Shown: one piece after another, positions 7,031 through 42,079 of the stretch
How the letters are laid out: each line of letters opens with the position of its first letter
Position numbering within the stretch: the stretch's first letter is position 1
Source of the DNA: Takakia lepidozioides
Taxonomy: Eukaryota; Plantae; Bryophyta
Direction: 5' to 3'
NCBI GenBank assembly: GCA_030704615.1
Contig: CM060734.1
Location: 51,274,001 to 51,338,000, forward strand
DNA length: 64,000 bases
Made by a program: the position numbers and the translations under genes
Notes under the pieces: generated by a model
What the model was told of the DNA's origin: nothing
What the model saw: the letters and a program-made list of their open reading frames with translations, nothing else
Databases searched by the model: none

Positions 7031-9908
7031 TGAGCGTGAAGTAAACTAGAAGCATCTCAAACCTTCTATGAAGGCCTCGAGGCTTAATTATAGATAGAAC
7101 TTTACTGCTATTAGAAAGGTCAATGGTCTAAATCTCGAAAGTTCATTTTGGACTCCATCTCACCAGTCTGTCTTATAAAGACCAGCCAGACTGCAGTTAC
7201 TTGCTTAGGTATTAAAATGGTCTGGTTTCTTGGGACTCGTCCCGGTATGGTATCATAGGCAAGGTCCTCTTCTCGAGGATGTAAGGTTCTCATAACACTG
7301 AATGCAATGTGTGCGCCTTATGGTGTAATGGGGGGTTTTAATTTTTCGCCAAATCATTTTTTAGTAAAATTCATCAGGGCCTCTGTCCCTGTTCTGTAAT
7401 TCTAAAAAAAAAGTAAAAAAAAGGACTGAAACAGGTCTCCTAGGCCCTTTGGCCCCTAAATGCAACCTACAACGGACAAGGAGCAATGTGTGCGGGGCTA
7501 CAAGGAGAGAGAAAAGAAATATGAAACAGGCGGGAGCCACCCTTTTAATCATTCCGTGTAATGCAGGTTATCTTTAACGCTAAAAAACACTAACTTCTAC
7601 ACATGACAATTCCACACCCCCTCTCCTTTGATCAAGTGTCAAGTGGCATAATCTCCTCCAAATTCTGAGATCTTGGGTTTTTTAGAACAAGAATGTCATA
7701 CGCACTATCATGTTGGGTTGCCTCCACCAGGCCCAACAGATTTCAACTGAAATCTATAGAATCATATTGATTTTTTTAGGTTGTTTTTGTTTTGTTTTGT
7801 TTTGTTTTCCCAAAAAGCATTCGACATTTAGTTTATTTAGTAGAGGGGAAAAATTAAAACTTTATGGTTTTTTTGAGAAATGCCAAAACAGGGCCCCGCA
7901 TTTAACGGTGGGGTTTTTGAACATTTTCTCTGATTGGCCCCAAATTTGGACAGGGGGGGCTGGGGGCTGGGTATTGGGTGGTTGAATTATCAAAATGACA
8001 AGTTTTTTCCAAGTTATAGGATTTCTATTAGGCGGGGGTCTTTTCTTTTTCCGAAAAAGTCAACCCCCCCCCCATCATAATTTGTTACCCAGCAACGAGA
8101 CTACCTGCTGCCCCCAGGCCGGCCTTAAACTCCTGTGATGGGTAGTATGTTCCTTTTTTTAAAATAAATAAAAATAAAGAAAGGGATCAATCTAATTAGA
8201 AAAGAAAAGTTCCCATTTGGTTTCAACAAGGTTGGATAAGGTTTGAATTTTTAAATCTGCTTATTCCAGGCATTACTTTATTGGCCCTGCCCCTGGGCAG
8301 ACTAGGCTGGAATGTTGTATGGATGCTCTCAGTCAGCAACGGAATTTGTTCAAGACCAGTGCAGATGGAGTATTTCATCCATATTTATAGATGAGCACTA
8401 AAAAATTCATTCACACAGTGACAGAGCTCCAGCCGGAGGGTCAAGAGCAGTGTCGGGCGCAGCGTCCGGGAAATAATTTCATTTGAACCAGCCAGTAGCC
8501 GCTCATTCCCAGCAGCAATCGGCTAAGTGGGTTGGGCAGTCGGTTGCTGCCCCTTAGTGGTAACTATACCCGGTCAATTTCCGGGATAAATTCTTTACAA
8601 CCGGTAATATTCCTAATGATTTATTTTGTGTTCAGCTATAAATCCGGCCCTTATAAATATCAACTGGTTGACAACACAAGTGTCAAATGCACAACAATAA
8701 GTAAATAATAATAATAAGAAATAATCACAACCAGTTTTAAGCAATTCAAACAAGTGAAGAACATTGTATCCTTATAGAAGTTGGACCTGTCAATGCCTTC
8801 AAACCACATGGAGGTCAAGAATTGAACCCGCGTGGACAGGTGAGCTGTGATAGCAGGCAACGAGTGCAAGCAGGCGTGGGGCTGGGGCTGCGAGAGCAAC
8901 GTCCAGACTTAGTAGGGTTTGCCCGTGGGCCGCCCTCTTGAGTTCAATATTTTTTAACGTAAACGCCCTTCCTCGGATGTAACCCGGCCTAGCACGTTGG
9001 AATTCTGCCATGTGGCAGACTTCGACGGCCATTTCCGTTTTTTGTAATATAAAAAGGGCCGGAATCCGTCCAGGCCTTGCCAACTAAGGCAGATTTCCTG
9101 TCTGTAATGAAATGGAAAGGCAAATATCCTTCTTAAAAGTAGGGCACCCGGTTGATTTCCGCTTCGGCCATTTTCCCCCTCGGATCCATTTCCTGAGGTT
9201 TCATATTTCATTCGGAAATTCTGGAATTTAGTCGGCTAGCATGTAACTGGCTGCCGGTTCTCCCCGGACGTTGGTCGGGCGGTTATTTGATTTTTTTCAT
9301 AACTGGTTCCAGTTGCTTCAAATTTTAGAAAACTATTAACCTGCGGTTACAGTTATTAAATTTCTTATGGCTAGATATAACCTGCGGGTTACGGTTACTT
9401 GCAAAAACCTCAAATAACCAGCTGTTTTCATCAAATAACGACGTGTGTTGGGCAGTTCTTTAAGAGGTTTTTTGCTGGGTTATTTGAATGCACAACCTCC
9501 ACCGGTTCCTAACTGGACCGGTTACTTCATTTTTTCACCTCCATATAACCGGATAGGTAACCGCCGGGTATTAGAGAGAAATTCAAATAACCTGCCAACT
9601 GGTCAAGAGCTCTCTGTAAATAGATTGTAGATTAGCTGCAAGTTGCTGCCTCCCGTTCGTCGGCGCCAGGCTATTCAGGGTTTTTACCACACAAAAAAAC
9701 AAGGAAAGGTGGACCAATTTTCCTGGGAGGAGTCACGAGGTGGGGGTGGCGACGGTGCCCCGCACCTGCAACTGGATCCGTGGCCCTCCCACTCTTTCTT
9801 TGGCAGATCGCTGGAATGGCTGGCCTGCATTGCCACAGAGATAACAAGGAAGAATTTGAGAGATGAGTTTGCACATCGTACAGAATTTCATGCTTTGATG
9901 GTACAGGG

Positions 9909-10082: not shown

Positions 10083-13000
10083 ATGGAGAGATTTAGAGAG
10101 AGAGGTAAGAGAAAGAGAGAGGTGCGAGCGTCTTGCAATGTACTACGCGCTCTGATTTCTTTTCCTGTAGCTGCTATGCTTTGGTATCTGGTAGTGCCTG
10201 TGGTTGCTGCGAGCTCGGCCTGCAGAACCGGCTGTGGAGGCGTCTCCATTCAGTACCCCTTTGGCATCGATCAGGGCTGTGGGAGCTACAGTTTTAGCAA
10301 CACTCTAGAATGCAGCAACCGTACAAACACCTTGAATTTCATCACCCCGTCTCTAAACTATACGGTACAATCCATTGACTATTCCAGGAACACCATCTCC
10401 CTCTCGGACCAATCCATGACCACCTGCAGTGATGGGCTTGTTCCAGGGGAAAATTTCAGTCTTGGTTCTTCGAGCCCGTTTTATCTCTTTGAAGATAACG
10501 ACCTGCTATTACTGAATTGCAAAGACAATGCCAGCCTTGTGCGGTCCTCTCTCTTCTCGTGCAATGACTCTGTGAGTGTCTGCAGTGCCTTCAAGACATG
10601 TACTGACTACTCTAATACTAACGCCTCGAAATTGGTTACCACATGTTGTGCGCTCAATACACGATCAAACAAGTCCATCGATCTCTCTGTGCTCAGGTAC
10701 ATCACATCCCCTCCCTTTCTGTGCCCTTTCCTCTCTGTGACGCAAGTTTACTGCAACCTGAAGCTGTATAGATATATACGCACGTACGAATCACAACTAC
10801 ATGGATAGGCTCTGGTCGTCACCAAACCTGCTAAGTGTGTCTTGGAGTATTTGTGGAATGATTCATGCAATGTCCAGATCGAGTCTGTAGCTTATTACAT
10901 TCTTTTGTCTCAATTTGCAACGATGGGATAGTTGTGCTGGCTATACAAGCCTACACAATTACAACTCGATCAGCACAGACATCAGCAAATTTAAGTTCTT
11001 CATTGAGCTTGCATGGATTGAGCCCCAAGAGCTTTCCCAATGCAATCTATGCGACAACAGCTCAGGCTCCTGTGGCTACAATTCTACACATGAGTTTTCA
11101 TGCCTTTGCGAAGACACAAACACAACTTCAGTCTGCCCTGGTAACGCTCTCTACTCCTGCTGGCATAATAGATTTTTCTTAAGTATCTCTCTCTGCCACT
11201 TTCTTGCCCTCAGGCCGCCTGTGGACATTATAACCTAGTTTCTTTCTGTCTTCTCTCTCTGCAGTCATGAGTGTTGTCGTACCCCGTGGGCCTCCGCGGA
11301 CGCAATACCTTTGTTGGTGGCCTCTGAACAGTTGTTCACACGATAGCTAAAGAACAATCGCATGACAATCGTACTTGCGATTGCAGGCCTGCTCACACAG
11401 TTTTGTAGAATTCCTTCACGGCAGCTTGCAACGGCAGTCTGAAATTGCGCAGAGCAAGAGGATGCAGAGAAGACGAACAATTCCATTCTCTTTCAGTTTC
11501 TCTGAAAGTGGCACTGCAACCGCCTCTTAGTCTCATCTATGTAGAGTAGGGAGGATTGTGGTGATAGTGGAGTGGGAGGGCTTCGTTCATACAGTAGTCG
11601 ATGCTCCCAAATGAGGTCAATTGATTTTAACCTTTTTTCTTCTCCCCGGATTTGCAGTGGTTCATTAACAAATCTAACTAAATGTGACATACCCCGCATT
11701 TCTCCATTTCAGTTGGGACAGCTCTCTCCAATTTCTGTCGAAATTTTGCTAACAGGTGCATCAAATTAACTCGTCTGCAGAATCTTCCACACACTTGACA
11801 TCAAGGACAAAAGCTGTGATAGGAGGTCAGTCACCACTCCATCATGCTTCCTTCTCCAATCTGTGTTTACAGCATACACTTTGTTCACAGTCTGTCAATG
11901 GCTCTTCAGTTTCAGTTTAAGTTATCTTGAGGAAAAGACTTTGCATCGCAGGTACAATTGTGGGAGTTGGTACCGTCATTCTTTGCGTTATTGTAGTCCT
12001 CACCCGCTGCTGCCGAATGGAGAAGCTGAAAGATTTTGAAGTCCTTGAGTTTGATACCATGGATGGCATCTTAGAAGCTCCTACCAGGTTCTCATACAAG
12101 GAGTTGCTTATTGCTACTGATAATTTCAGTAATCAGCTCGGGCACGGCGGGTTTGGCGTAGTCTACAAGGGGGTCCTTACAGATGGCCAGTTGATTGCAG
12201 TCAAGAAGTTGGAAGGCTCAAGGCAAGGAGAGAAGCAGTTCCGAGCTGAGGTACCAACATCTGAGACTGTCTAACATTGCATACTCTGTCTGGGATATAA
12301 TACCACTCTTTTAAGAGTTTTAATTACAGTAAAGAGGTAGTTGTATCAACTGCAAACTGTGGTGAGAGCTTATGTTTTCCATACATTTGTTCTCTTGCTC
12401 TAAGCTACAAAGTCCACTGAGTGCATCCTCTCTCTTGTACAAGGACAGAATGCCACTTTCAAAGATTGACCCATGTGGCACTCTGGCTGCTATAAAGCTT
12501 CTTCCTTTCCATCTTTCTCCGGAATTTTTCAGCACCTCTGTGGGCCTCAACTTACTTGCAGTGATCTAGTAGTTATTCCTTAACTGTTTTGCCTATTTTT
12601 CCCATTAGTTCTTTGGATACTTGTAGAAGTTAAGAGGTCCCTTTTCGATTCTTGTTTCTTATGTGTTTGTGGGCCCATTAAGCTGTTGGATTTAATTGAT
12701 CCCCTTTCTTTCTTGTCTCAAACCAAACAGTTCTCTAGTTCCCCTACTGCGACTGGCAGTGCAAGCACAAGAATGCCACAGGAGAAAGATCTTCTATTTA
12801 ACTTTTGATTGCTCCATGGTAGGTGTGAGGCATAGGTCACTCCCAGAGCTCTTTCATCTGCACTTGAGTAATCAACACTGTTGTTGGCAGGCATGAGGCC
12901 TGTGGCAACTTATCTGAGTTTCAATCCTTTGTAGTCAGTGTTTGCAGGAAACGCATGATGAGTGCATCTCTGCAACCAAGAGAACCTCCAATCCAGAGTG

Positions 13001-14267
13001 AGGGACATAACTGCAATGCCCATCCGACCTGCAAACACTTAGAATGTCCAAGAGACCCAATCAGCTAGAAAGTCCAAAATCTTTCAATGGGCTCAATTGA
13101 CATTGTGATCTGAAACTTTCAGGTGGCTACCATAGGCAACATCCATCACTTCAATCTGGTGCGCTTCTTTGGGTACTGCGTCGAAGGCTCTGAGAGACTA
13201 CTTGTGTATGAATACATGAACAACAGTTCACTTGACAAGTTTGTGTTTAAGAAGAGAAAAGAGGGGTTCATCCTTGACTGGCCTAGACGCTTCTCAATTG
13301 CCTTGGATGTGGCCCAAGGATTGGCGTACTTACATGAGGGATGCAGAAAGCGGATCGTGCACTGTGACATCAAGCCAGAAAACATCCTTTTGGATGACAA
13401 TTTCTCAGGAAAACTTTCTGATTTTGGACTCGCTAAGCTCATAGACAGGCAAGAGGCCGATGCTTTCACAGTTGTGCGAGGTACCCGAGGCTATCTGGCC
13501 CCTGAATGGTTTCTCAGCAACACTCCCATCACCGAGAAATGTGATGTATACAGCTATGGGATGGTGCTATTGGAACTGATCGGAGGTCGACGGAATGTAG
13601 ATTTTGAGCTCAGCTCACCCCAATTCTACTTTCATGTCTGGGTGTATGACAAGATTGAAAGCTCTGATCTCAGGGAGATCATCGACATGCATGTTGCAAA
13701 GACAGCAGATTTGGATCAAGTCATGCGTTTGGCGCGTTTGGCGCTCTGGTGTGTTCAAGAGGATCCTAGCCAGCGGCCTACAATGGGCAAGGTAACTTCA
13801 TTTTTTTCTACAGTTTTGTGTCTAATGTACGATCAAGGGAAAGGTTCCCCCCCAGTGTGGTATGCCATGTCACTGCGGTTGTTGAATTGCCGTTAAGGAA
13901 GAAGCATTCAACTTTTGTAACAAGCAGTGAACAAAATCATCTTGAGATGATATTTGCTCACCTTAGGTTCGAACCCTTGAATATGTTTTGCTGTAGAAAA
14001 CCTCTTCCCATCCTGTGTCCCTGGAGGCTCAACTTGCAAAGAACTTACAGCAGACCTGTCTTGGCCACTGGAGCCACTGTACTGTATTATAGATCTGATA
14101 TTTCCAAGTTGTCTCTCAATTGACTTCAGGTGGTGCAAGTGCTAGAAGGTGTCAGTGAGGTTGAAAACCCACCTGTTCCCTTCAGAAGACCGAATGTTGT
14201 GTTGCGTACCAAAACCTCTGTTTCAACTGCCACTGGAGGGTCTTGGAGCTATCCCTCAGGGCGATGA
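10083..14267 (+). CDS. Receptor-like Ser/Thr kinase: signal peptide, WAK-type Cys-rich ectodomain (GUB_WAK_bind/WAK_assoc-like), TM helix, non-RD kinase. Exons 10083-10696, 10932-11140, 11781-11825, 11952-12250, 13123-13791, 14130-14267
   Basis: [21 protein letters not shown] ectodomain start; [14 protein letters not shown]...FSCLC; [19 protein letters not shown]; [63 protein letters not shown]; ends PSGR*. All junctions are GT-AG and in phase. The start could alternatively be the ATG at 10176. Confidence 0.92.
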
Positions 14268-20300: not shown

Positions 20301-22884
20301 GGCGGAAATTGGCCCTCGCTCGTCTGCGCGCCCCCTACGCCCCCTGTATCGCATTGTGGAGGGGCCCCCATACACAACTTCGTGAAGCTCACGTTGAGCC
20401 TCAAAGGTTTTTGAACGCATTGGGCGACTGATTGGTCATAGCTCGGCTCATCTGCATCGGGAAAAGACAAAGGTTTTTAGTCTTGAACGAGGTTTTTGAA
20501 AGTGCAAGGGTTCACTATGTAAGGGTTACAACTGACTAGGACAAGCATAGTGGTTCGGATTACACGATATGGGTTTCACCACCCTGTTAGAGACAGTAGT
20601 TTGCAATGGGTTACACTACCATGGGTAACACTAACTGAGATTACACAACTAGAGGGTAACCAAATCTAGGGTAAACAGCGAGGGGTACCATTGGGCACTG
20701 ATTACAACAGGGTTACAAACTCCGAGGGTTTTACACTGATTTACACACAGCGAGTTTTACACTGAGTACAATGTTCCACATACCGAAGTTTACACACGGA
20801 TTACAGGGTAACACAAACGAGGGTTACCTGAGTTACAAGGTTCCACATAGCGAGCCGTTACAATGATTATACAGATTACACACAAAGGGGTTACACGACG
20901 AGAGTGGTGACAGTGGGATGGAGTAACACTTACAGAGATACAAGGCACTACATACCCAAGGTCTCTCATATACTGGATGCCAAACGCGCATTATAAGTCC
21001 ATTTTCTGTTGGTGATTCGCTGAATAGGCCACAACACCAAAGCTGGATAAACGCTTCTCTCTGTTGGATCGCAAAGTGTGGGCGGCGCGACGACGGCTTG
21101 TTGCTTGCAAAAACTGTATAGCTCCGTTGATCTTAATTGACCGGTCACCCCCACTCTTCTGTACCAAAATCGATCTTAAGTCTTCGAGCTCAGAATCCAA
21201 GGTCGCAATTCCGTCACCAGGTTGTGCAAAGTACATCAGACTAAGCGCGTAATACTCATCGACCAGGTCCTTCACCTTTGAGGCCGTAAGAGCACTTTCC
21301 AGAAGTTCAGTCGTGAACCCCAACCTGGGATGCGTTTGGGAAACTGACCTGCCATGATTTCTTACATCGTTGTGGGCTAGAATTCTCAAAAGGAGTGGTG
21401 GCGGTCCAGTGCGTGTTTGGTGAGATTCTCCATTTGACTGATTAATCCTTCGGCAAAACCACGAGTGAATTCCAACGGATGTGGAACAACCAAACCTTTG
21501 ATTCCATCTACAGTAATAGTGATGACAAGAGGATTTGAAGTTCTGGCATCGTCAAGGTCGGTATTGCCAACAGCTAGTTCGTCCATCGTGTCATCATCAT
21601 GTGAGGCTTTGGCTCTCTCGATGGACTCGTGTAAGTCTCCCACCTTTTTCTTTTTCTGCTTTGGCATGTCAGGATGCCCAATGCTCTCTAAATACTCCTT
21701 CACCCGATTCAATTCCTCTATCATTAACGGACCATGATCCGGCTGGGCAGTAAATGCCTTGTGGGCAGCAACAACACTGTCCCATCATCGCTCTAAGATG
21801 ATTCGACCTCCCTGCGCAATACAGCGTGAGGGGTTACACCAGAGAAAAAGTTTTACAGCACGAGGGTTTACACATGAAATGGGTTACAAACAAGATGGGC
21901 TACACGGGGTTACACAGAGGTGGGTTACACACCATAGGGGTTTTTAAAAGGGGTCCTGTGTAGGTGGGTTACACTCTGGGTTTACACGCCACAGGAGAGA
22001 CAGGGGGGGTAACACAAAGGGTTACATGGATAGACAACAGCCCAAAATTTGAAAAACAGAGAAATGGCAGGGAATCCAACTTGATTGTCTGTCGATAGAA
22101 CCCAACTTGATTTTGCAGCTGTCGCATGGACTGCGCCCTCGCCTCGTGCAACAAATTCTTGGAATGCCGGCCAAAACCCCTTCTCATTGACATTCGGAAA
22201 TGGGAACTGAGGAATAAGGCCATGCGGTAGCAGAAGGATTGAGCCTGGAGTTCTCTTTTGCAAGATGAACCTTGAGCTCCGGTTTCCCCGGTTTGCAATG
22301 TTGATTTTCTTTGCAATAGGGACAGGTAGAGGCAGGCTCAATCGCCGCTTGTCTCTCTCGTTAGAAACCTGCCGAATAGAAGGACCAGGGACAGAAACAG
22401 CAGGAGCACTAGAAGATGGAACCTCTGTAGCAGAAATAGCCGAAGAAGGTACAACAGCAGGCACTTCAATAGGATCTGCAATCTCACCCAAAGCCACCCT
22501 ATTTTGCAGAATCCATGCATGATATGCATCAACAGAAGAAGCTGGAACAGAATTCATCACATTTTCAACAGCCATGGCATGCTTGAGCTCCGCATCAGGA
22601 AACGGTTTTGTTCCTTTCGGTCTGGCCATACATGCGGCCGTTCCATCGACAATATGCCGATTCAATCTGCTCTTATCTACCTTTACTGCCCCACAATAAG
22701 GACATTTGAACTTAGGCCGGCCCTTTGCTCCCTCCACCTTGGCCTCTCTACACCTGGTGTGGCAGTACGCGATCATTGTAGCATGCTCATGCTCAGTGTA
22801 CCAAAAGCGAACTCGTTCGCCATCCCTTTTCAAGTGATCAAATGGAATAGTAGCCTCTCCAGGGAACAAATAACAATCAGCCAT
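17381..22884 (-). pseudogene. Multi-exon transposon gene: N-terminal BED-like C2HC zinc finger, acidic GDT-repeat region, C-terminal Ulp1/peptidase C48 domain
   Basis: FKCPYCGAVKVDKSRLNRHIVDGTAAC at ~22630-22710. The exon ending DLVDVVVIPIVF at 18000 splices to DHWSVAVL...IVHLDS at 17799 and, after frameshifts, PQRSCWEWGFYALCF...WPKK* (stop 17381). Joining all exons into one gene is an inference. Confidence 0.65.
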
Positions 22885-24207
22885 GACAAAAGAAAAAGCT
22901 GACAGAAGAGAAGAGAAGAGCAAGAGCAAGAAAAGACAAGACAAGAAAAGACCAAGACTTGTGAGAATTCCGAAGAATGCACAACAGGGAGCACGCACAG
23001 CAAGGAGTGCAGGAAGAATATGAATGGCTGCGAGAAGGGGAAAACTGAACAATGATCAAAGAACGAAGAACGAAGCTAGCTAGATGTCACCCGTAAGGCA
23101 CGTCGGTTAAGCGAAAGACGGCGGTTCATTAAAATCTGGCGGCTTGCAATCAATTATATCCGCACTGACTCACACGTGTATGAGTTGCAATCCCGGTGTC
23201 ACCCGGAATAGCGGAGTGTAACCCGTAACCCTACACTTGTCAGCGCGACAAACCGGCCATTACTCGAATGCCAGGCACGTCGAGTGTAACCCTCCGTCAG
23301 GTACCCAGATATGATGTAACCCTTCGTCACAACCTCATGTACCCCTAGTCTATGTGACTCCCGAACACAACATCGATGTAACCCTGTCATATCAAACCAT
23401 TAGTATGCAACCTCCAGGTAAACATGGTCAATGTAATGCCCCACCCATGTAACCCTAGCCTATGTGGCTCCGCGAGCGCAACATCCACGTAACCCATCAA
23501 ACATGTCAACCCATCTAAACCTCCATTACTAAACCGTCTACCAAGCTAGCATGTATTGAGAAAGAAAACACCGTGTAACCCCCTGTGTGTAACCATACCA
23601 CACGTGAGGTAGTCATATAAACCATCAGACATGTAACCGGTTGACAGTGCTTGCAAAACACGCATGATTCGATACGTATTGCATCCATAATAGCGATGAG
23701 TAGGCTGCCCCGGCTGGTGTGTGAACAAAAGATACACGAGAGGAGAGTGAATGGGCACCCCGTCAAATGAGCGGCTGCTTGCATGGCTAGACCGAAAGAA
23801 ACAAAACCCTTTCCTAATGCGGATCTTAGGAATACCATAGCCATCGGGGACGGTGACAAAACAACAAGAATGACATTGAGAAAGAAAAATGATAGAGACA
23901 ACCGTATCAATCGTAGAGAAAACCGTGGTAATAAATTTGACGGATCGTTGCACGGAAAGAGTTGTCTTGTATGTTGCTGGGATGACGATACTGAACTGAA
24001 TGAACTACAAATCTTTCGCATTGATGTGTGAAGCCGATTGGGCACCATGGGAATTGCAGAAAGCTGATGCCCCAAAGCAAAAAAACGAGCGAGCTAAGAA
24101 TCTGGAAACGGATGGAGAGAGCAAATTAGGGTTTCGGCCTCTATTTAAACCTCCATTCGGCCGTCGGATAGTTTACACGTGTATGATGTACACGAGGCGG
24201 TGATACT

Positions 24208-27959: not shown

Positions 27960-28610
27960 CGACACTGGTGAAGACACCATGGCGTTGCTGCTGAAGCCAA
28001 TATCCGAAAAAGTATTTGGTCATCTTTTCCCCCTTGCATGGTTGACCAGTTCACTCCAGCCTGTAGCTTAAGTTTTTTCTCCTGAAGGTTGTGATGGATC
28101 TCGAGGTTTTTCCTAGCTTCCAAGTATGTGAGGTAAGTGTGCTCATCACGACGAGGAGATTCCAGCCTGAGCTGACAAACTTTCAAGCACTTGCGAGTGC
28201 CTTGACTTTATGCTTACTGATGGTTGCCAGGGTCTGGCTCATTTTCTGACCGTGGATGTTGACGGCTTTAATCTTGGCCATGAACCGATCTGTTGGGTTC
28301 TGATTGACTGAACCTGATTGCTGCTAGGCCTGGATGAGACCCTACTTGAAGGATGGCAGTTTGAGGAGGATACTACTAAGCTTGTACAAGCCTCTGCCTC
28401 TACGTTGAATATCTAGGATGTTGATTGCCACTGATATTGGAGCATGATGAAATCCCAAAGGGATTGGCTGCTGTGGCAATCTTTTCGACCACTGAACTAT
28501 GTTAAGTGAGATGTAGGCTCTGTCCAAACGTGCCATCTGCAGGTTGTTGAGGGCTCTGTTGTTGGTCCAGGTGGGGGTTGGTATCGTGTGAGCACAACCC
28601 GCGGTCATAG
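27960..28610 (-). pseudogene. LINE ORF2 fragment: end of the AP-endonuclease domain and following linker
   Basis: PTWTN...MARLDRAYIS...GFHHAPI...RGRGLYKLSSILL matches the FTW...SRLDRF...SDH.PI...WK.N pattern. Stops follow downstream. Confidence 0.75.
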
Positions 28611-29818
28611 GGGTTAAATGTTTTCAAACCGCGGTCATAGGAATTACATGTTAACAGGCAAGGTGCATATGTGAGTACCTTCAAATTTATTTTCTCAATG
28701 CAAAAATAACTTTTCCAGGGCTTAAATTGCTGATACCCGGACTGAAAACCACGATTTTTGTTTTTGCGCCCTTTTCTCAAGTCTATGCCGGAAAGGGCCT
28801 AGTATCCGGTTCGCATAATGTGAGGAAACCCCCCGCCTATAGGGTAACATGTTTATCGTGTATAGGTGTTACTTGTTTCTTAAATGATGTTGTGAGGGCC
28901 TATGTGAACAGTTAAAAATAATTTCGCAAAGTTTTTAGTTTCTCAATTTTAGTTTCGCTGAAGAATATGCGAAAAAAATCTAGGGAATATCCTGAATATT
29001 CGCTTATGCTCACGTTAGCATACTCACACGCTACCCAACCTTGTCGAGGTAAACGCAATCGTTGGCGCACGCTCCCGCCAACAGCAGGGCGTCGCAACAC
29101 AACCCCCCCCCCCCCCCCCCTTTTTTTGCAGTACTGTCTCCCTGGAACAACTCCACATGATCCTAGAGAACATCAAAACCAAACACCAGCAAGAGCTTGC
29201 AGTAGCACAAACTACATGCCACCACAAGGTTACAATTGCTGACTTCGAGGACGAGAAAAACGCTATTCTTCGTTAGTACAACAACTGAGGTCCATCAAGC
29301 TGACTGGGAACACAAATGGGAGAGACAGAGGGGTCGCAGCAGCGGCAGCCCCAGTGTCGGGCTGCCGCAGCTGCGACCCCACACACTGGGGCTACGACGC
29401 TGTGACGCCCTAGTGCATCCATGCGGTGCATCTATCCTCATCAAGGGCTTTCCAACAGTACCAAGAGTGTAGGGGGAGGCCCCGTGGTCTGGGAAATCTT
29501 TACGTAGCAGAAACAACAAACAAAACAAACAAACCATACGATAGTCTTGAGAAATACATATACATATATAGTGTTCTTTGTTTTGTTGTGGTTTCAAATA
29601 TTTTTGGTATTTTTATATCAACAAAAATAAGATTTCTAGAAGGTTGTTGATCTATGCGGACATCAAAGTCCTCCACTGACAACTTTACTGCGACTCTACT
29701 ACAACCTAATTTCAAGTATCTCAGCTCAAAGGTTGCAACAGAATCCTTCAGACTTGCAACCAAACAACCACGTGCGACTTCCTCGTAATACTACTTCGTC
29801 TTATCATTGCATTTCATC

Positions 29819-30235
29819 ATGGCACTACATTCATCAGTTGTGCTCACCGCTCTCATTCTCATAGACTTGAGCATTCAAGGCGGTGTTGTGGCACTCGGCA
29901 TCAATTGCCGCGACAGCTCCAATTACAATAATGCGGAGAACCATGGAGCACTGCAATAGTTGGTGACTGTCATCAACGATATCAACCCCAATTGCTTTTA
30001 CAACAATAAAAAAAAAATTACATGCGGCGCTTTCGAGGGACAATTCATTTGTGTCTTCTGCAAAAGGTCCGACAGCACTCCCGACTTCTCGATCAAGACC
30101 TTGATTCAACAACTTACAGATCACGGTTGTAAGGTCTGTGGAAGTATTTCACTTTCTTATCCACAAGACAACAATGTTGCCGACGGGATGCTGACTTTCA
30201 ACGCTGTCGCTTTTGGCTGCGGGCAATGCCAATAA
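29819..30235 (+). pseudogene. KP4 killer-toxin-like secreted Cys-rich protein, copy 1 (intronless; TAG at 29957-29959)
   Basis: Signal peptide MALHSSVVLTALILIDLSIQGGVVA, then LGINCRDSS...LTDHGCKVCGSISL...NNVADGMLTFNAV, matching the recalled KP4 motifs LGINCRGSS and HGCRVCGS.PL...NDV..G.LT.N.V. Confidence 0.88.
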
Positions 30236-30773
30236 TGTTGACCTATGCTAAGCGGAAAGTAAATGTCCTAAAGCGAACACGGTGACAATGATATGAATAT
30301 AGCAAAAGACTTTAGGAAAGTTGGTATCCGTGGTAGCGTACCAAAGATGCCAGCTGCATGCCTTATTGAAGCAGAATACGAAGCAACGGCTTTTGTTTTC
30401 TATTTTGTTTTTTCTAGAAAACTTGCAGGAAATAGCCGTGTATTCTGTTCATTTTATGTGGAGAAGTTTGGCGATTTCATCCTTGAAATAACAACATTTG
30501 CGACAAAACAATTTATTTACGTATTCTTTGTTTGGTTGTGGATTCGATATTGTATTGTATTTTTAGATTAACAAATTTATATGTTTAGAAGTTTGTTGAT
30601 CTATGTGGACATCAAAGTCCTCCACCGGCAACTTTACTACAACTACTACAACCTGATCTCAAGTATATATATGTCTCTGCTCGAAGCTTACAGTAGAATA
30701 CATTAGACTCGCAACCAAGCAAACACAAGCGACCTCCTTGTAATATTTCTTCGTCTTACCATTGCATTTCATC

Positions 30774-31220
30774 ATGGCACTACATTCATCACTTGTGCTC
30801 ACCGTTCTCATTCTCATAGCCTTGAGCATTCAAAGCGGTGTTGCGGCAACCGGCATCAACTGTCAAGGCAGCAGTGATTGATGGATAAGGTTTCAACATG
30901 GACCAGTGGTACAAACGTTGGTGAACGCCATCAACGATCATATCGACCCCAATCGCTTTTACAACAATGAAGAACAGATTGCCTGCAGCATATTTAGACA
31001 ATATGTTTGTGTCTTCTGCCAAGGTTCTGGTGGCGCTCCCGGCCACTCGATCAAGACCTTGATTCAAGAACTTGCAGATCACGGTTGCAAGACCTGTGGG
31101 AGTATTCCACTTTTCTATCCAGAGGACAACGATGTTGCCAATGGTATGCTGACCATCAACGCGGTCCAAAATGCCTACACTTTTGATACTTATGATGGTG
31201 GCTACGTTGGCATATGCTAA
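30774..31220 (+). pseudogene. KP4 killer-toxin-like secreted Cys-rich protein, copy 2 (intronless; TGA at 30879-30881)
   Basis: MALHSSLVLTVLILIALSIQSGVAA-TGINCQGSSD*...LADHGCKTCGSIPLFYPEDNDVANGMLTINAV...GIC*. About 250 bp of upstream sequence is shared with copy 1, giving a ~955 bp tandem duplication. Confidence 0.88.
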
Positions 31221-33289
31221 TGAGCGGAAAACAAACACTACAACACCCCATGGGATTTCCAACCAGCGAGGTTTCACTGTCATTTTCACTATTGACACAT
31301 TTCACTATCATTTTCACTAGATTGTTAATAATTGCTGACAAGATACTCAACTCACTATATAATAGTTATGTTGGAAGTGATATTTATTATATTTCAATAG
31401 CTATTTGTAGTAAAACTACGTCAAAGAGGTTTCATATGACCAAGATATGGCCAAGCCTACAATATATAATTTAAATCTGACCTTATAAACTCTAAACAAT
31501 AAATGTTAATTCCGCATTCATTAAATTTTTGGCTTAGAAGCATATAATTGACTAATTAGTCAAATCTTTCACTATAGCTAGGGAACATGACTCACCTATA
31601 CACGTGGCACAATATGAGTGGCTGAAAAATGCGTGGGACCAGCTACGTGGGATATATAGTCATGGATACTTTTTGATTCAATCTCTTCGTCTTTAGTTTA
31701 ACGAAGTCCTACATGTGCGAGCTTGCGTGATTATGTGTAGGATCTAAGTCCTAAAATGTGTAGTTTGTATATTGTGTGTGATCTTTGAAGGTGGTTGAAC
31801 TAGCTTTTCTCATGCATAGAAGAGTCTGTTGTCACTCACCGTAACATTACTAGGGTTTTGTAGATTTTGAGAATTGGTGGATAGTGGTGCAACGGCTATG
31901 TTTGGTCGCGGCTTGATGAGAATACGGCAAGGCTGAAAAGGCAGCGTTTTGGAGTACAAGACAACTTGTCCATCTTGCAAATGTGGGCTCTTGATCTTGT
32001 ATCATGGTTTGATATTTTTCTTGGTATTTACAAGATTCTTGGGAGGGTCAACTTGGTCTTAGGAGGCCGAGTTTCTATGGCAAATGGCTACTCAGCTGCA
32101 CCAAAAATTGTGCGTTTGAAGAACAGTTTTGATGTCAAAGTTGACCTTCCCAAAGAAATTCTTTAAAGAATCAACTGAAGTAGCTCTTTCTGGTTCACAC
32201 AGTTGAGCTCGAATTTGTCTTGCTTTGCATCCAGTGCAACCCTAAATAGACCAAACCTACAGCTGCTGTCAGGAAGAAGCATCAAGCTAGGGTTAAGCAA
32301 GTTCAAAGTGTGGACGTTGTGGAAAAGAAGCCAAGGGGCTACATAGGCTTGGGCTTGAAGACAACAATGGCAAGCACTTGGAGAGCACTAAGAAGCTCAA
32401 GAGGTTTTGAAAGGGAGCATGTGAAGAAATCTTCCAATCATGGTGGTGTGGAGCCAAGCTTAGGGCGCCATTGGAAGGGCTTGGAGATATATGGTGGGAA
32501 ATCCTTGAAGAGAAATCATCATTCAATGTATGCATAGCTTCACCCTAACTATGTAATGTGACAAGAGGGGGAGACAATATTTGGCTATTTTTAACTGTGT
32601 GGGGGAGTTTGGCCTAGAAAACATACAGTTCACAAAAACAAAAAGGCTGGCAGGAACACAATTCACATTACATTCCATCCAAGTTTTTTTTTTTTACAAA
32701 AAAAAAGTAGGCCAATTTGAGTCATTCTCTCAATGATTGCACTTGCTTCCGCAGAACCATTGCTTCCGCAGAACCAAGTCTCTCACTGAAGTCTTCCACT
32801 AAGAGGACCCTTAGCCAATCACTCTTGCCATAGTTTTCAATTTGCCACTCGTTAAGTTTCATCTCTCAGGTTTTCCCCCATTTTCTTCCCTAAGCTCTAT
32901 GACCTATCTGCGGACGTTATAAAGCACCATTTCATTTCATTTCATTTCATTTCTCATACTTTTAATTTTTGGCTTTGATTTTATTTCCTCTCTCATGTTC
33001 TCTTCCATTTTGTCCCATAAACACTAGGAGCTTCCCGCGACATTATAGAGCACCAATTCATTGGATCATTTCATTTCTCATAGTTTTTATTTTGGGCTCT
33101 GACTTTTTAATCTCTCTCATATTTTTTTCCATTTTGTCCCACGAGCACTATGCACTTTCCGGCGTCTGCGGTCGTTATATAACATCATTTCTTTCCAAAT
33201 CTCATAGGGGGACATACTTTCAACTGTGTTTTTGCTATTTTTGGATGGGCAGCGTGCGTTCCTATTTTTGGCACATGTTCCTCTCGGTG

Positions 33290-34640
33290 ATGATCCAAAT
33301 GTCTTCTCCCTTCGTTCTTGCATTATTCTTTTCCCTTGCTCTGGATTGACATGCACTTGCCATTTTTATAGTTTGTTTTCTACGTATCTTAATACCAGGT
33401 TCCAAGGACGAGTCTTTGACTAAAATACTTTCCGTTTCAATGACTCTTTCATAACATTTGTTTCTCCATTTTTATTTTATTTTCTACCCTACTAACACAT
33501 ACTAAGTTCGAGCGAGTGCGAGTCTGTGCATGAAAGCCAAACCCTAAACCCTTACCCTTCCCTTTACAAATAGGAATGAACTATCCATACCATAACCATA
33601 ACCATAACTATTATGGTTATTCAAATGTCTTCTCCCTTCATTTTGGCGCTACTTTTTTCCTTTGTTTTCGATTGCCATGCACTTACATTTGCATAGTTTG
33701 TTTTCTAAGTATCTTAATACCAGGTTCCAAGGACGAGTCTTTAATTTAAATACTTGTCCGATACAATGACTAAACTTCCATAATATTTTGTTTCTCCATT
33801 TTTTTTTATTTTCAACCCTACTAACAACACTAAGTTCTAGCGAGTGCAAGTCTTCCACATTTGTTTGTCCATTTGTATCTTAAACCCAAACCCAAAACCC
33901 CTACCCTCAACCCTTACCCTAAAACCCTAAAACTTTACCCTTAAGCCATTACCCCTAAACCCTTACCCTTCCCTTTACAAATGGGAATGAACTATTCATA
34001 CCATAACCATAACCATAACCATAACCATTATGGTTATCCAAATGTCTTGGTTATCTAAATTTTTATTTTGTACCCTACTAACACACACTAAGTTCTAGCG
34101 AATGCGAGTCTTTCATGTTTGTTTGTCCATTTGTACCTTAAACCCAAACCCTAAACCCTTTGCCCTAAACCCTCACCGGAAACCCTAAACCTTTACTCTT
34201 AAGCAATTACCCTAAACCCTTACCCTTCCCTTTACAAATGGGAATGAACTATCCATACCATAACCATAACCATTATGGTTATCCAAATGTCTTCTCCCTT
34301 CATTTTTGCGCTAGTTTTTGACATGCACTTACCTTGGCATAGTTTCATTTCTATGTATCTTAATACCAAGTTTCAAGGATGAGTCTTTAATTTAAATACT
34401 TGTCCGTCTCAATGACTCTTCCATAATATTTGTTTCTCCATTTTTATTTTTATTTTTATTTTCTACCCTACTAACACACACTAAGTTCTAGCGAGTGCGA
34501 GTCTTCCATAATTGTTTGTCCATTTGTACCTTAAACCCAAACCCAAAACCCCCCAAAACCCTTAACCTTACCTTTACCATTACTCCTAAACCCTTACCCT
34601 TCCCCTAACCCTAAGCCTTACCCTTACCCTAAGCCATTAT
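33290..34640. repeat. Degenerate tandem array of ~250-420 bp units containing telomere-like CCCTAAA/CCCTTA runs and (CATAAC)n
   Basis: The unit marker CAAATGTCTT recurs near 33296, 33622, 34039 and 34284. CCCTACTAACA...CTAAGTTC..GCGAGTGC and CCCTTTACAAAT.GGAATGAACTAT also recur. Confidence 0.85.
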
Positions 34641-35359
34641 CCTTACCATAAACCAAAAACCTTAATGTACTACCCTAGTTACACTCCAAACCTTATTATA
34701 CTACCATGTTACCTCTTTTCAATGTTTCATGCTCTTTTGTTATTTTCTTTTGTTGGATAAGGTACGATAGAAGGATTACAGGGATATCAAATTCCCCTTA
34801 CATTTATTAATTCGAGCGAGTGTGAGTCTTCCATATTTGTTTGTCCCTTTGTACCATAAATCCAAACCCCGTAAACCCAAACCTTGTTGTGCTAACCTGT
34901 TACCTCTTCCTAATGTTTCATGCTATTTTAATATTTTACTGCCCTTGTTACTCCCAAAACATCATTCCAATGGTGTTGTCTATGAATGTGCTTGACATGA
35001 AGATTCAATTAAAATTAGCAAGTTGTGTCGAGTATGGTAGAGTAGGAGTTTGCCTGATGTTCGATGCGACACATTTGTTTATCGCATAATGTAATATTAT
35101 GACATCATTCGACTTCCCACTGGACGTTTCATGAATTGTTGAGTACTGCAACTCCACAAGCACTTCAATGTCAACTGGACCTCTTATATGACACATTTTG
35201 AAGCAAGTATGATATCACCTATAATTTCACAAAGTTCATTCACACATTACACCATAATATTATTAATATTTGAATTAATTCAGTAATATATTAAGTTTGA
35301 TCCGGATTTAAGCCAAAGTCCAGAATTAGTTCAAATAGGGTTTTATCGTTGGCCCTCCA

Positions 35360-36400: not shown

Positions 36401-39312
36401 GGAGCTCAATGTGTCCGTCTCAAAGAGTTGCAATCAAGTAACTCACTGTGCTCCTCATGCTGAGGTGCCACAACTTCATACTCAGTAAAAGCAAAAGCGC
36501 ATGATCCAGCAGCTTGGGCCACTGGATTCTCTTATGCTATACGTGTCACAACATTATTGTGCCCATCAGTTGGCTCTACCTTTCCAACTCATAATGGAAA
36601 ATTCCATTATGTTTTGATGGGTACCTACCAGAAGGTTATCCCGATAAAATTGCTCAATCCAAACATGTTGGTGTACCCTCCGGAAGATTGTTCTTATCAT
36701 TTTTTAAAGTTTATAAGAAATCCAAACAAATATGTTTATTACCTTCTGGAAGGATATTTATACCATTGAGTCATGTTTGATGGGTACCTATCATAATGTT
36801 GTTCCTATCAATTATAGTTGTATTTATTGGGAAAGGTATGATCTTGATAAATAGGTATTAACTGGGAAGGTAAGTTAGGAGAAAACTACCTATGAGCGGT
36901 CGCTCCATGGGGAGGAGCCAATAAACACCTCAAACAAACAACCCAGCAACCCTCAGCTAATGCAACGAAGAAAAAATAACTCTCTTATGTCACTGCATGC
37001 GTTCCAAAATGGATGTGACAATGAATGACAATCATCCAACAAAAACATTGGTCTTGTGACAAGGAGGAGAAACCACTTGCGTATACTCTGCCTAGGGGCA
37101 AGCCAACAAATTCACAAATGTATCAATTCTGATGCTACATTTTCATGTTAAAGAAATATTTAGATCATAGAATACAATTGAAAGAGAATCCAAATCAAAC
37201 CAACCAAAAACTGCAAACGTTTACTTGGTTTGTCTATTGTTTATTTAATCTTGTTTATTTGATAGAGGTGGGAAGAGTCGTGCCACAACACATGTAATTT
37301 ATAGTGTCAATTTATCCCCAACAATTATTGCCTTCCGTTGGGAAGGGTGGACACCAATGTTGGAATGGTAGATAGGGTATTGTCCCAAGTAACAAAATAC
37401 CGACCTAGCTGGTAAGTATTTTTAAGATTAAGAACCGGACCTTCTTGTTACTATTGGCACTTCCAAAATCAATACCCTATCTAGGCTAGTATTGGCATTG
37501 AAGGGAACACCCCAACAATACCTGGATTAGGGGCAAAAGCAAGGACCATGTACAAGGTATACGTATTAAGTAAAACTATTAACCAATTTTGGGCGGATGG
37601 ACATCGGTATGTGCAGCCCCAATCACCGCCACATCCTCTTCAATCTTTACCCCACCATGTCCTACCTTGGTGGGCTGCCTCTCTTGGGTGAAAGATTTTT
37701 TGTCTGTCCTGGGAATGCAATATGATCAACGAGAATTGAGGACCTCGTTGCAAATATGAGCATTTTGAAGCTTGTAGATAAATTTCTAACCGGATTTTGC
37801 ACATACCTATAAATATGCATATGTAATGCAAAAGGCCGACTCGCTTTAGCTACATTATTATTTTTTATTTCTTTTAAAAAAAATTCTTGGTGAAACAGGG
37901 ATGGAGCCCTGAGAACTTTATTACTTGATTATTTGAAGGGCAAAAAATTAAAACCCTTGAAGTGCCCGCATGCTGCCATAAGGCTTAACTCACGGAGGAC
38001 CGTGCTGGATAACTCTAGGACCATAACCTGAGAGTGGACTCTCGTATAAACGACATTATGAACCGACATGGGCTTGAAGCCTTATCGAAAACCTTGTAGA
38101 CTTACATTGCTTCAAGAATCCATTAACAGTAACGAAAGTAGGTCTAGATCTACGACAGTGGAGAGAACGGAAAACAGGGAAGCCGAAGGCTGGAGAGGGT
38201 GCTTGGAGGTGGCCGGGAGGGAAGGAGAGAGCAGGGGCGAATCTGATGAGGCAAGAAGAGGGAGAAGCTATTGCTAATTGGCTATCAGGATGAGAACTGC
38301 GAGTCTATCTGTGGAAATGGAGACGAGTTTATAATACATAATTTATTTTTTCTTTGGAAACAAAGTATGAATATAATTTTTATTTAAAAAATAGAAATTT
38401 AAGGTAAAACATCTTTTATTTTTTAGTTCGTAGTTTAAATTATATTTATCTGGGTTGGTAACCAGTTAGCATTATCATTGGAATACCAGTCGAGTTGACA
38501 ACCATCCACAAATCGAGAAATGCTTTTATTGGAAACCGACGAATATTGGCCAACTTGGTATTAAAAAATAAAAAAAATTCAATATCAGGACCTGGCTGGT
38601 ATTAAAAATAATAATACTCATCCGACAACGATGGCTTTTACATGTACGGATACATGAGAAGATACTAATTTAGCGAAGGCTCATCGAATCAGACTTCTTT
38701 AAGATCTTTCCCAATATTTCTGGTTGTCCTAGTTGTAGATCCCACAAATCAGTATAAAACAGATACTATATTTTTATTAGCACACAATACATGTGTGTGA
38801 ATGAAACATAAGTTGCAAAGAAAAAGAAATAAAAAAAGTTGCATGAGTTATCCTACATGTATGCCTTCCAAAATATTCTTCAAGTATGTTAACTTTTCTG
38901 GAATTTGATATATTCTGCGACTATTTTAACTTAATATCTGGAAAAGAAAAAGATTTGAAGAAATACCCCCAGGAAGGTAACCCCTTTAGAGTGAATGAAA
39001 GATTCACATATACACCCTGTACACTTATTTTTGTTGGGTTTGCATGTTGTTGAGTTTTTTGGAACAATCTGAGAATAACATTTTATTTATTTTATAAAAA
39101 ACATGGGTGCGGACATTGCGATGGCGATGAGGCATTAGGTTCTCTCAAATTAATGAGGGCTTGTGAAATGTCCAACCGTCACATGACACAAGAGAAAAGA
39201 GATGATAATTTGGGCTTGCGGAGAAGTATGTTGTGAACTCAGATCTCATGTAGCTTCGAAAGAAAATTTGGAGTAGAAAGCTGGGATATTATCAGGAGAG
39301 TCACCCTTGGCG

Positions 39313-42079
39313 ATGGAGAGTTGGAATTCTACAGTGCCTGCGGCAATTTCAGTGTTGGTTGCAAGCAAGGCATGGATTGGGTGGATGTTGCAATCACTTC
39401 TGGCCGCTACAATTCTTGGTTTCATCTGTCTAAAGATGTCAGTGCGCAAGAAAAAACTACCACCAGGTCCTCCCGCATGGCCAATTGTGGGCAACTTGTT
39501 TTCTTTGGGTGTGCAACCACATAGAAACCTGGCTGAACTTGCTTGGAAAAAATATGGAGGCCTCATGTACATGCACTTTGGGACAACTCCAGTCTTAGTG
39601 GTCTCAAATGCGAAGATGAGTAGGGAGCTGTTCAAAGTCAACGATCTTGCATTTGCCTCAAGACCCGCCTCAACGATTTTTTACACATTTTGCAAGTACT
39701 TGCCAAATGCCATGGGACTCATGGTCTACACACCTCAGCTACGACACTTACGTCAAATATGTAAGACAGAGCTTTTTACAAGTGCAAGGCTGGATGCGTC
39801 ATCAAATCTGCGGTATAAAGGGGTTGTAGAGTTGATAAAGTCTTTTTGGGATTCAACCCAAACACTAGGAGAAGTAGTTGAGATCCATCCTCCCTTGCAA
39901 CGGCTCAATGTAGAAACCATGTACAGGACCCAGCTTGGTCGGTTGTACAGAGCTGATAAACAAGTGCAAGAAAAGCTTGAAATTTTCAAAGACTTGTTTG
40001 AGAAAGTAATAGGTACGGCTGGGAGGCTCAATATTGGCGACCTAATTCCAATGTTGAGGAGGTTTGATCTACAGAGCTATGAGGCCAACTTAAAACAGCT
40101 AAAGCCGATCATTGATGAGATGGGCTCCTACATTTTGAAGGAGCACCGAAAGGCCAAGGCAAATAGGTCGATCACCCATAGTCCAGATCAGTTGGACTTT
40201 ACTGATATACTTATGGAGAACTCTTTATCCGATGAACTCGTGATGTCTCTCATCTTTGTAAGTTATTTTTCTCCACTCTAGCTTTGTCCCCAATCTATTA
40301 CACAATAATCTTTCATTTTGAAAGTGCAAATTTATCGCTGCGGTCAAATGTGATAAAGTTCACGCCTTGGGTTTATAACATTGACAACATGAGAGCACTT
40401 TAAGCACACGTGACACATCAATTACATATTATATAGATTAATTAATGTAATAAGTTGGAGAGTCCATTGAGTAGTTATAGGTATGAAGAACAAAGAAACT
40501 AATATCTGACAACCTGGTTCTACTAGTCGGGGATAGACATGCCACGACGCGCTGATTAGAACTAGAGTACGCTAATGTAATATTATGCTCATTTGAATAC
40601 AGGATATGCAGTCTGGGGCCTCTGATAATATGATCGCATCCATGGAGTGGACACTTATAGAGCTCATTCGACATCCGCACGTGATGAAAGAACTCCAAAA
40701 AGAGATTGATGTTGTGGTTGGAGTTCACCAGAATGTCAAAGAGTTAGACCTTCCCAAGATGCCCTACCTACAGGTATCAATGTGGTTTCTGCCCGATGAG
40801 AGTCCATATCTTGTAACCATCTAGAAAATTTATTATATGCACGATAGTTACACATTCCAATATTTGCAAAAGTTCCTATGTCTCTGTCTCTTATTACATG
40901 ACTATTTATATCAAGGTAAGTCCCCTACCTCACATTAAAGATAATATATCTATAGATTCTCTTTTGTTCCACCTAAACTCATCAGCACTGGGTCTATGGC
41001 CACAAAGCTTATACGACAAGCAACATCTGTATATGAGTGCATTAATTTGGCTAGTCTAGTGTATATGGTCATGAGTTTTTATGTCGACCAGCTCAAAATT
41101 ATTCATGGTCAAGAGTTTTCATGACTGTTGTATCATAATTTTACAATGAAATCCAGAAATTTAAGGATACTGCCAAAACTCCCTCTAATGCAAAAACTCT
41201 TTATAAGGTGGGGGAGAAAAGGTTGAGTACGCTTACCAAAACAAACTAGAACAACGTGGTTTCTAAACTCATCGCCCCACATATCCACACATCTAGTAAC
41301 TGGTTGACCAGGACCCCATTATAGCTGGAGCTATAGTAAGGGATAGCAATTTTTTCTTGCTTCGATCCCCCAAAGAAACTTATAAAGAGCCTCTCCTATA
41401 GTGCTAGGAAGATTAATGCAGGCCCTGGGGAACTCCGGAATTTTGAACTGGAGCTCAACTATATGACCAAAGTGTTCAAAGAGGATAATATGGAGCTGAT
41501 CACAACTTCTACTTGCATGTAACTATTTCTAGCATTTTTGGGTTTTGTTTATGAACGTTTACACTAACAATTCTCACTTGTGGCGCACTGCAGGCAGTCA
41601 TGAAAGAGTCATTTCGTCTCCACCCAAGTGCCGCAATGGGTGTTCCTCGATACAATCCACAAGAAGTCACTAACTTTGCAGGGTATACGATTCCTGCAAA
41701 CACGACGGTCATTTTCAACACTTTTGCCATTCAACGGGATCCTGCAGTGTGGTCAGATCCCAACAAATTCATGCCTGAGCGTTTTTTGAACTCTGGTTTG
41801 AATGTTTTGGGCAATGACGATCAACTTATTCCATTTGGAGGTGGAAGACGCATTTGCATAGGTATGTCATTAGCAATTCGCTTCTATCAATTGACATTAG
41901 CTTCCATGTTGCACGCATTTGACTGGACACCCCCTTTAGGAAAGAGCCCTGCAGACATGGATATCACTGAGGGAAATGGGTTTGTGCTTCACTTGAAAAA
42001 CCCACTATTCGCTACTGCTACACCTCGCCCTGCCGTGAAGGCTTATCTGGAAAGCAGTGATCTTCTAGATAAAGCATAA
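39313..42079 (+). CDS. Cytochrome P450, CYP71 clan (A-type), ~533 aa. Exons 39313-40257, 40603-40773, 41594-42079
   Basis: Membrane anchor followed by KKLPPGPPAWPIVGNL; FASRP; K-helix ESFR; PERF; heme motif PFGGGRRICIG. Two phase-0 GT-AG introns and no disabling lesions. Confidence 0.95.

Follow-up and report, generated by a model that had tools for sequence, protein, structure and literature searches.

Two interrupted KP4-like genes in tandem, probably of fungal origin, in a land-plant genome

The stretch of DNA analysed here (64 kb, hereafter the window; positions count from its first letter) carries two KP4-like genes, one behind the other, each broken by an in-frame stop codon. With a probability that we put at about 80%, they form a tandem pair of KP4 killer-toxin pseudogenes that reside in land-plant nuclear DNA, derive from a fungus, belong to an expanded family and were disabled independently of each other. 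The transfer of KP4 from fungi to mosses is already published (Brown 2011, Yue 2012, Guan 2023), and the pair adds to it a decaying lineage distinct from that of Physcomitrium. The two copies themselves are best regarded as dead genes, devoid of direct functional interest. Their value is that of a data point for the published story of mosses that borrowed KP4 from fungi more than once, in this case with a KP4 family that has multiplied, is turning over and leaves dated relics behind.

Reading frames, breaks and family membership

An earlier note on this DNA had described a tandem pair of KP4-like genes with one internal stop each, and the sequence, the list of open reading frames (ORFs) and the Pfam Kp4 profile all agree with that description. 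The two frames and their breaks are located as follows.

29819 to 30235, + strand: reading frame of KP4 copy 1, 138 codons plus the terminal stop, interrupted (ATG at 29819, TAA at 30233-30235)
29957 to 29959, + strand: in-frame TAG of copy 1, at codon 47, inside the domain and flanked by positions 33 and 38 of the Kp4 profile
30209 to 30235, + strand: tail of copy 1, its frame differing from that of the homologous 3' DNA of copy 2, with a net length difference of 11 nt
30774 to 31220, + strand: reading frame of KP4 copy 2, 148 codons plus the terminal stop, interrupted (ATG at 30774, TAA at 31218-31220)
30879 to 30881, + strand: in-frame TGA of copy 2, at codon 36, in the second of the six conserved cysteine columns

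According to the sequence and the ORF list, the pieces 5' and 3' of the stop share one frame in copy 1 and copy 2 alike. Inspection of the translations and their alignment reveals in each a hydrophobic, signal-like segment that leads into GINC, the start of mature KP4 (in copy 1, the signal peptide occupies approximately codons 1-25), and the HGCxxCGS and LTxNxV motifs are carried by both. The signal peptide followed by GINC and HGCxxCGS that had been noted beforehand is thus present in each copy. A six-frame scan with the family HMM found no third KP4 copy in the 64-kb window.

The assignment to the KP4 family was examined by HMM search and by structure prediction, the search and folding programs being given the pieces of each copy separately. 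Read-through translations, used in our own scripts only, carried an X at each break. The C-terminal pieces match the Pfam family Kp4 (PF09044, gathering cut-off 27.8 bits) at E 7e-20 and 71.8 bits for copy 1 (29960-30232) and at E 6e-25 and 88.2 bits for copy 2 (30882-31217). The N-terminal pieces give short matches of 17-18 bits over profile positions 2-33, at E 3e-3 for 29819-29956 and E 5e-3 for 30774-30878. Searched against the PDB, a profile of the clade retrieves 1KPT at E 1.7e-14. For the C-terminal piece of copy 2, AlphaFold run on an alignment of 19 rows gives a model with a pLDDT of 84 and a pTM of 0.77, whose sole significant Foldseek match in the PDB is 1kpt_A (E 3e-5, TM 0.73/0.78, rmsd 1.8 over 96 columns); this match to the alpha/beta sandwich of 1KPT covers the C-terminal piece of copy 2 only. 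At the level of sequence and modelled fold, the membership of both copies in the KP4 killer-toxin family, as originally claimed, is confirmed.

The Kp4 profile coordinates also settle where the stops lie. They continue across both breaks, from positions 2-33 to positions 36/38-125, so the stops fall inside the domain and introns that would hide them are rejected. Each copy retains five of the six cysteine columns conserved in close homologues; in copy 1 a tyrosine occupies the second column, where copy 2 has the break (TGA). Both copies combine an incomplete cysteine framework with an interrupted reading frame. A read-derived contig of sequencing run X1 matches 29883-30044 exactly and spans the TAG of copy 1, a check that is not independent if X1 is the sample behind the assembly, as it may be. 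For the TGA of copy 2, neither an exact spanning contig nor a variant row was present among the read-derived pieces listed.

The 3' ends differ in another way. The tails diverge after the shared NAV residues and are a net 11 nt apart. In the pairwise DNA alignment, TATGCTAA is the 3' end common to both copies and is in frame in copy 2 only, the anchor offsets giving its TGC a frame offset of 0 there, as against 1 in copy 1. Because TATGCTAA is in frame only there, the tail of copy 1 would most simply be a frame change rather than a diversified end, and the proposal that the different Cys-containing tails reflect diversification before decay is not borne out. Most likely, then, the two copies are tandem pseudogenes, and a functional protein from either is improbable. 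The candidate antifungal locus of the earlier note is not, as both interrupted copies stand, a working one.

Relatives and fungal affinity

Sequences close to the two copies come from fungi and metagenomes. A word-indexed search returned 16 proteins with 43-60% identity, from Fusarium, Aspergillus and metagenomes, and an exhaustive phmmer search returned 359 representatives, the best being 63% identical. A profile search extended the set to 572 proteins, including one from Glonium stellatum (P0297) with up to 65% identity. Among the best 120 of these 572, the named ones are all fungal, mainly Pezizomycotina with some Agaricomycetes, save a single Physcomitrium patens cluster (P0361, 45% identity), and none of those named is algal or from another plant. 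The gene neighbours of two homologues are themselves fungal, P0147 lying beside UstYa and short-chain dehydrogenase genes and P0138 beside HET and NACHT-type genes. When the flanks of the pair were compared with the contigs of the closest homologues, similarity was limited to 50-86 nt within the coding sequence, at 73-79% identity.

In a maximum-likelihood tree of 69 rows and about 140 columns, unrooted and with poorly resolved deep branches, copies 1 and 2 are sisters (support 95/89). Together with P0147, P0154, P0001, P0187 and Penicillium sequences they form a group with support 94/87, and in the unrooted trees they are nested among fungal (Pezizomycotina) sequences. Both the profile matches and the tree fit the horizontal acquisition that had been proposed, and from them we infer that the gene was probably acquired from a filamentous ascomycete. 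Given some 140 columns and an unrooted tree, the donor and the number of transfer events are both inferred.

Among the alternatives, the one that fares best holds that the pair goes back to the same acquisition as the Physcomitrium KP4, or to an old vertical plant family, and that the copies are divergent orthologues. KP4 is known in mosses: the record for P. patens goes back to Brown 2011 (cited in PMC9506348), a survey of horizontal gene transfer in moss mentions it as well (PMC3493653), and two papers that cite Guan et al. 2023 describe the P. patens gene as acquired from ascomycete fungi and as having a role in protonemal development (PMC11228847, PMC12513842). P0361, moreover, belongs to the same large family as the copies. 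Its 45% identity is nevertheless well short of the 65% of the Glonium stellatum protein, and in the 69-row tree it is placed elsewhere, beside Colletotrichum in a separate, well-supported part. A clade uniting both copies with P0361 is rejected by an AU test (delta lnL 56, p = 0.0001), which was planned before the labelled tree as a test of one clade and concerns this one P. patens cluster. The named top matches point the same way, P. patens being the only plant among them and algae being absent. Since the common clade is rejected, the KP4 lineage found here differs from that of Physcomitrium, and a shared acquisition or vertical descent is unlikely.

Duplication, paralogues and surroundings in the plant genome

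The preferred reading of tandem, fungus-derived pseudogenes includes a local duplication, whose parts are the following.

about 29570 to 30258, + strand: duplicated block 1, in which KP4 copy 1 is preceded by about 250 bp of upstream DNA and followed by about 20 bp on its 3' side (pairwise alignment, repeats D1-D5)
30259 to 30519, without strand: spacer of about 260 bp, non-homologous to DNA outside the pair, with a high-copy repeat at about 30316-30509
about 30520 to 31235, + strand: duplicated block 2, in which KP4 copy 2 stands between its upstream region and a short 3' stretch (pairwise alignment, direct repeats)

The earlier note had put the duplication at about 955 bp and had included the upstream region in it. 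Both points hold: the direct repeats D1-D5 are spaced 949-961 bp apart with 78-85% identity, the two KP4 genes on the + strand are 955 bp apart, and the roughly 250 bp upstream are homologous. The duplicated block proper measures roughly 690 bp. Summed contig depth peaks at 9018 in the bin of the spacer repeat (about 30316-30509). No terminal inverted repeats or LTRs were found to bracket the pair, and without them transposon capture of the duplicated unit is rejected.

Divergence between the two units is uneven. The signal-peptide codons show zero synonymous change, the upstream DNA has about 0.19 substitutions per site, and the mature domain of copy 1 compared with copy 2 gives a dS of 0.53, a dN of 0.27 and a dN/dS of 0.50 (bootstrap 0.28-0.89). 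Since this ratio is below 1, it suggests that purifying selection acted on the mature protein during some of the period that followed the duplication; it would also fit copies whose function was lost only very recently or is retained in other individuals. Some X1 contigs pass from one unit into the other at homologous points (29689 to 30640, 30115 to 31083, and 30547 back to 29625), and this observation, together with the uneven divergence, suggests exchange among paralogues.

The same run bears on the size of the family. On a 5.8-kb stretch, 1383 X1 contigs could be placed at a likeness of at least 90%. Single coding positions are covered by 6-8 distinct X1 contigs with another letter, and summed depth over 29540-31867 amounts to 340-890, against 56-73 in neighbouring unique DNA, summed depth not being equivalent to copy number. 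These many variant contigs show that several close paralogues exist elsewhere in the genome, and it is plausible that intact ones are among them. The birth-and-death evolution postulated beforehand is supported in that the family is multi-copy and has decaying members.

A second alternative is that the genes are functional, the stops being assembly errors, strain-specific alleles or codons that are read through, and that the pair works as secreted antifungal or developmental KP4 proteins. A dN/dS of 0.5 is indeed below neutral, both copies retain a signal peptide and the majority of the motifs, and each gene was duplicated with its own upstream region. Against this, an exact read-derived contig contains the TAG, the two copies carry different stops, the tail of one has changed frame, and each has lost one conserved cysteine column. 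Nor did transcript contigs turn up: in the small, putative RNA runs X6 and X7 (33 and 49 million letters, in the form of contigs whose depth is uninformative), no RNA contig falls on either coding sequence, which is weak evidence for the silence of both copies in these runs. One X6 contig of 961 nt resembles 30640-30713, upstream of the gene in unit 2, and then runs into unrelated sequence. A working pair is distinctly improbable.

The pseudogene pair is flanked on either side by a plant gene on the same contig.

10083 to 13896, + strand: plant receptor-kinase gene, with a WAK galacturonan-binding exon and a kinase exon (GUB_WAK_bind E 6e-12, Pkinase E 1.6e-38)
39307 to 42079, + strand: two-exon plant-type cytochrome P450 gene (Pfam p450 E 5e-21 and 9e-39)

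To our knowledge, the WAK galacturonan-binding domain occurs in plants only, and every named relative of the P450 is from a land plant, the best database identity being 38%. Base composition at third codon positions (GC3) is 0.48-0.53 in the KP4 copies and 0.39-0.55 in the host exons, compared with 0.51-0.83 in the nearest non-plant homologues (0.57 and 0.73 in the two with fungal gene neighbours). Depth in run X1 is likewise even, exact contigs on the KP4 copies reaching 53-64 and the unique flank about 56. Run X5, an independent 'plant metagenome', contains exact contigs at 29434-29633, the junction of the flank with unit 1, and at 33084-33234 in the outer flank, as well as contigs with 1-2 differences on the spacer (30339-30510) and on the other outer flank (28340-28490); all four have a depth of 2.6-3.1.

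These data bear on a third alternative, in which the segment comes from a contaminating fungus or was wrongly assembled as a chimera. The close relatives of the KP4 copies are all fungal or metagenomic, as such an origin would have it, and no read-derived contig spans the whole locus. Opposed to this are the plant genes that lie on both sides of the pair in one contig, a GC3 that is host-like and unlike that of the nearest fungal-type homologues, the equal low depth of locus-specific and flank contigs in the independent run X5, and in X1 the agreement in depth between unique KP4 contigs and unique flank. On the strength of the flanking genes, the host-like GC3 and the depth agreement in X1 and X5, contamination is unlikely, and the alternative as a whole can be given very little credence. 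The location in plant DNA that the earlier note had assumed is upheld by the WAK-type kinase and P450 flanks, the host-like GC3 and the X5 contigs.

Nor is the pair part of something larger from a fungus. Between 16 and 39 kb, ORFs of at least 100 amino acids have zero Pfam matches, no HET or other fungal-type domain was found near the pair, and a larger fungus-derived island is rejected on both grounds. The description of the surroundings as a transposon-rich island is true only in a loose sense: the immediate flanks contain satellites and repeats, and the retrotransposon fragments are 25 kb and 13 kb away from the pair. In place of bracketing repeats there are only a 22-nt hairpin at 29330-29380 and short A/T-rich inverted repeats.

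A reading of the copy 2 TGA as a selenocysteine codon, for which its position in a conserved cysteine column might speak, has a negligible probability and is rejected, since an Rfam search of the window yields neither a SECIS element nor any other family above threshold, land plants generally lack selenocysteine machinery as far as we know, and in copy 1 an ordinary codon for a residue other than cysteine fills that column, the TAG lying elsewhere.

Proposed history and comparison with known KP4 systems

The history that we propose for the pseudogene pair would begin with an ancestor of the lineage that gained a KP4 gene, small, secreted and disulfide-rich, from a filamentous ascomycete. The base composition of the gene would then have become host-like, and its copies would have grown into a family, in part through local tandem duplication of a unit that included its own upstream region. 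After duplicating, the two copies present in the window may have been under some purifying selection, until each was disabled independently by its own in-frame stop; copy 1 would in addition have undergone the frame change in its tail, and one of its conserved cysteine columns is filled by a residue other than cysteine. KP4 acts on calcium, with an antifungal effect in Ustilago and an effect on protonemal calcium and cell development in Physcomitrium. Going by family membership, intact members would be expected to be secreted modulators of calcium uptake or of calcium channels.

A more tentative extension, possible but held with less than even confidence, is that this plant lineage owes its KP4 to a filamentous ascomycete through a transfer separate from that of the Physcomitrium lineage, and then built a family of tandem arrays at multiple loci, far larger than the two genes of P. 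patens, in which an arms-race role in defence would prevail over a housekeeping role in development. It is the active gain and loss of KP4 copies that would suggest such an arms race. Were this true, and were the host lineage outside the sampling of Guan et al., the pair would represent an additional, undescribed KP4 transfer event. The genome would in any case be well suited to asking whether plant KP4s are kept for antifungal defence or for calcium-dependent development.

With the KP4 toxin of Ustilago maydis virus P4 (1KPT), the copies share the Pfam family, the GINC start of the mature protein, the HGCxxCGS motif and LTxN. They differ from it in that identity is only about 23% in the structural alignment of the copy 2 model, and in that the Ustilago toxin is the product of a dsRNA-virus gene, whereas here it is a chromosomal plant gene with stops. 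Their cysteine pattern, unlike that of 1KPT, is the one of the ascomycete KP4-like clade, with its six conserved columns.

The KP4-like (KP4L) proteins of Pezizomycotina, including Fusarium kp4l-1/2/3 and those of Glonium stellatum and Penicillium, are the sequences closest to the copies. Both have the extra cysteine CxFC, as seen in P0001 and P0139, and in both, small KP4 genes stand in tandem a few kb or less apart, as in Fusarium (PMC9506348) and on contig L010. By contrast, the copies described here have a plant host and a host-like GC3, and both are broken. The Fusarium KP4-like genes form small tandem clusters and contribute to wheat seedling rot (PMC9506348), and their proteins act as virulence or antagonism factors.

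Finally, PpKP4-1/2 of Physcomitrium patens are a parallel in terms of host, being likewise fungus-derived KP4 genes in the genome of a bryophyte-grade plant, secreted and of similar size. At least three independent fungus-to-moss KP4 transfers were reportedly recognised by Guan et al. in 2023, and PpKP4-1/2 are said in the same study to affect protonemal development via cytoplasmic calcium. The two systems differ in their sequences, with 45% identity to the single P. patens cluster retrieved and a common clade rejected, and in their numbers, several close paralogues here standing against the two KP4 genes reported in P. patens. They differ also in their state, since a working role in protonemal development is reported for PpKP4-1/2, whereas the copies found here are pseudogenes.

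Flanking genes, unmatched ORFs and the G-rich minisatellite

The following features flank the tandem pair of KP4-family pseudogenes:
10083-13896, WAK-type receptor kinase gene
21982-23052, minus strand, ORF of 356 aa
24197-26458, G-rich minisatellite of 2.2 kb, with words resembling GAGGGTTACA
39307-42079, P450 gene

The top database identity of the P450 gene is only 38%, and public protein data cover the host lineage poorly. The 356-aa ORF has no Pfam match, nor do the ORFs of 112-186 aa that adjoin it. The minisatellite has nested periods of 19, 46, 95, 194, and 256-340 nt. Lying some 3 kb upstream of the first KP4 copy, it produces a GC skew that reaches +0.49.

Repeats between and around the duplicated units

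Four further repeats lie closer to the pair:
29330-29380, inverted repeat of 22 nt, GC-rich, with a 7-nt loop and 95% complementarity
30316-30509, repeat in the spacer that separates KP4 unit 1 from unit 2
32256-33031, very high-copy repeat
33288-34937, repeat cluster of CCCTAAACCC words and ACCATA microsatellites, with spacings of 250-660 nt

The inverted repeat is located about 190 nt upstream of the first duplicated block, and one contig of X1 (read-derived contigs, possibly from the assembly's own source sample) switches strand there. In the same run, where summed contig depth is not a copy number, the spacer repeat reaches about 150-fold and may correspond to a small inserted element, and the repeat at 32256-33031 reaches 12,900-98,800 per bin, as against about 60 for unique DNA. 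The latter repeat is also found in contigs of the two putative RNA runs, X6 and X7. Within the upstream region of unit 2, positions 30640-30713 are matched, with 5 differences and 2 gaps, by a 961-nt X6 contig that then runs on into unrelated sequence; this contig could represent either a paralogue that is transcribed or a repeat. The CCCTAAACCC words of the downstream cluster resemble the plant telomere repeat.

A tandem KP4 pair in a probably fungal contig

Two intact KP4 genes, at 42-491 and 1503-1943, are carried in tandem by L010, a 2-kb contig from the public run ERR10900068. One of the two was measured for GC3, and its value of 0.83 makes a fungal origin of the contig probable. The tandem habit of the KP4 pair of the window is seen in L010 for the donor-like group as well.
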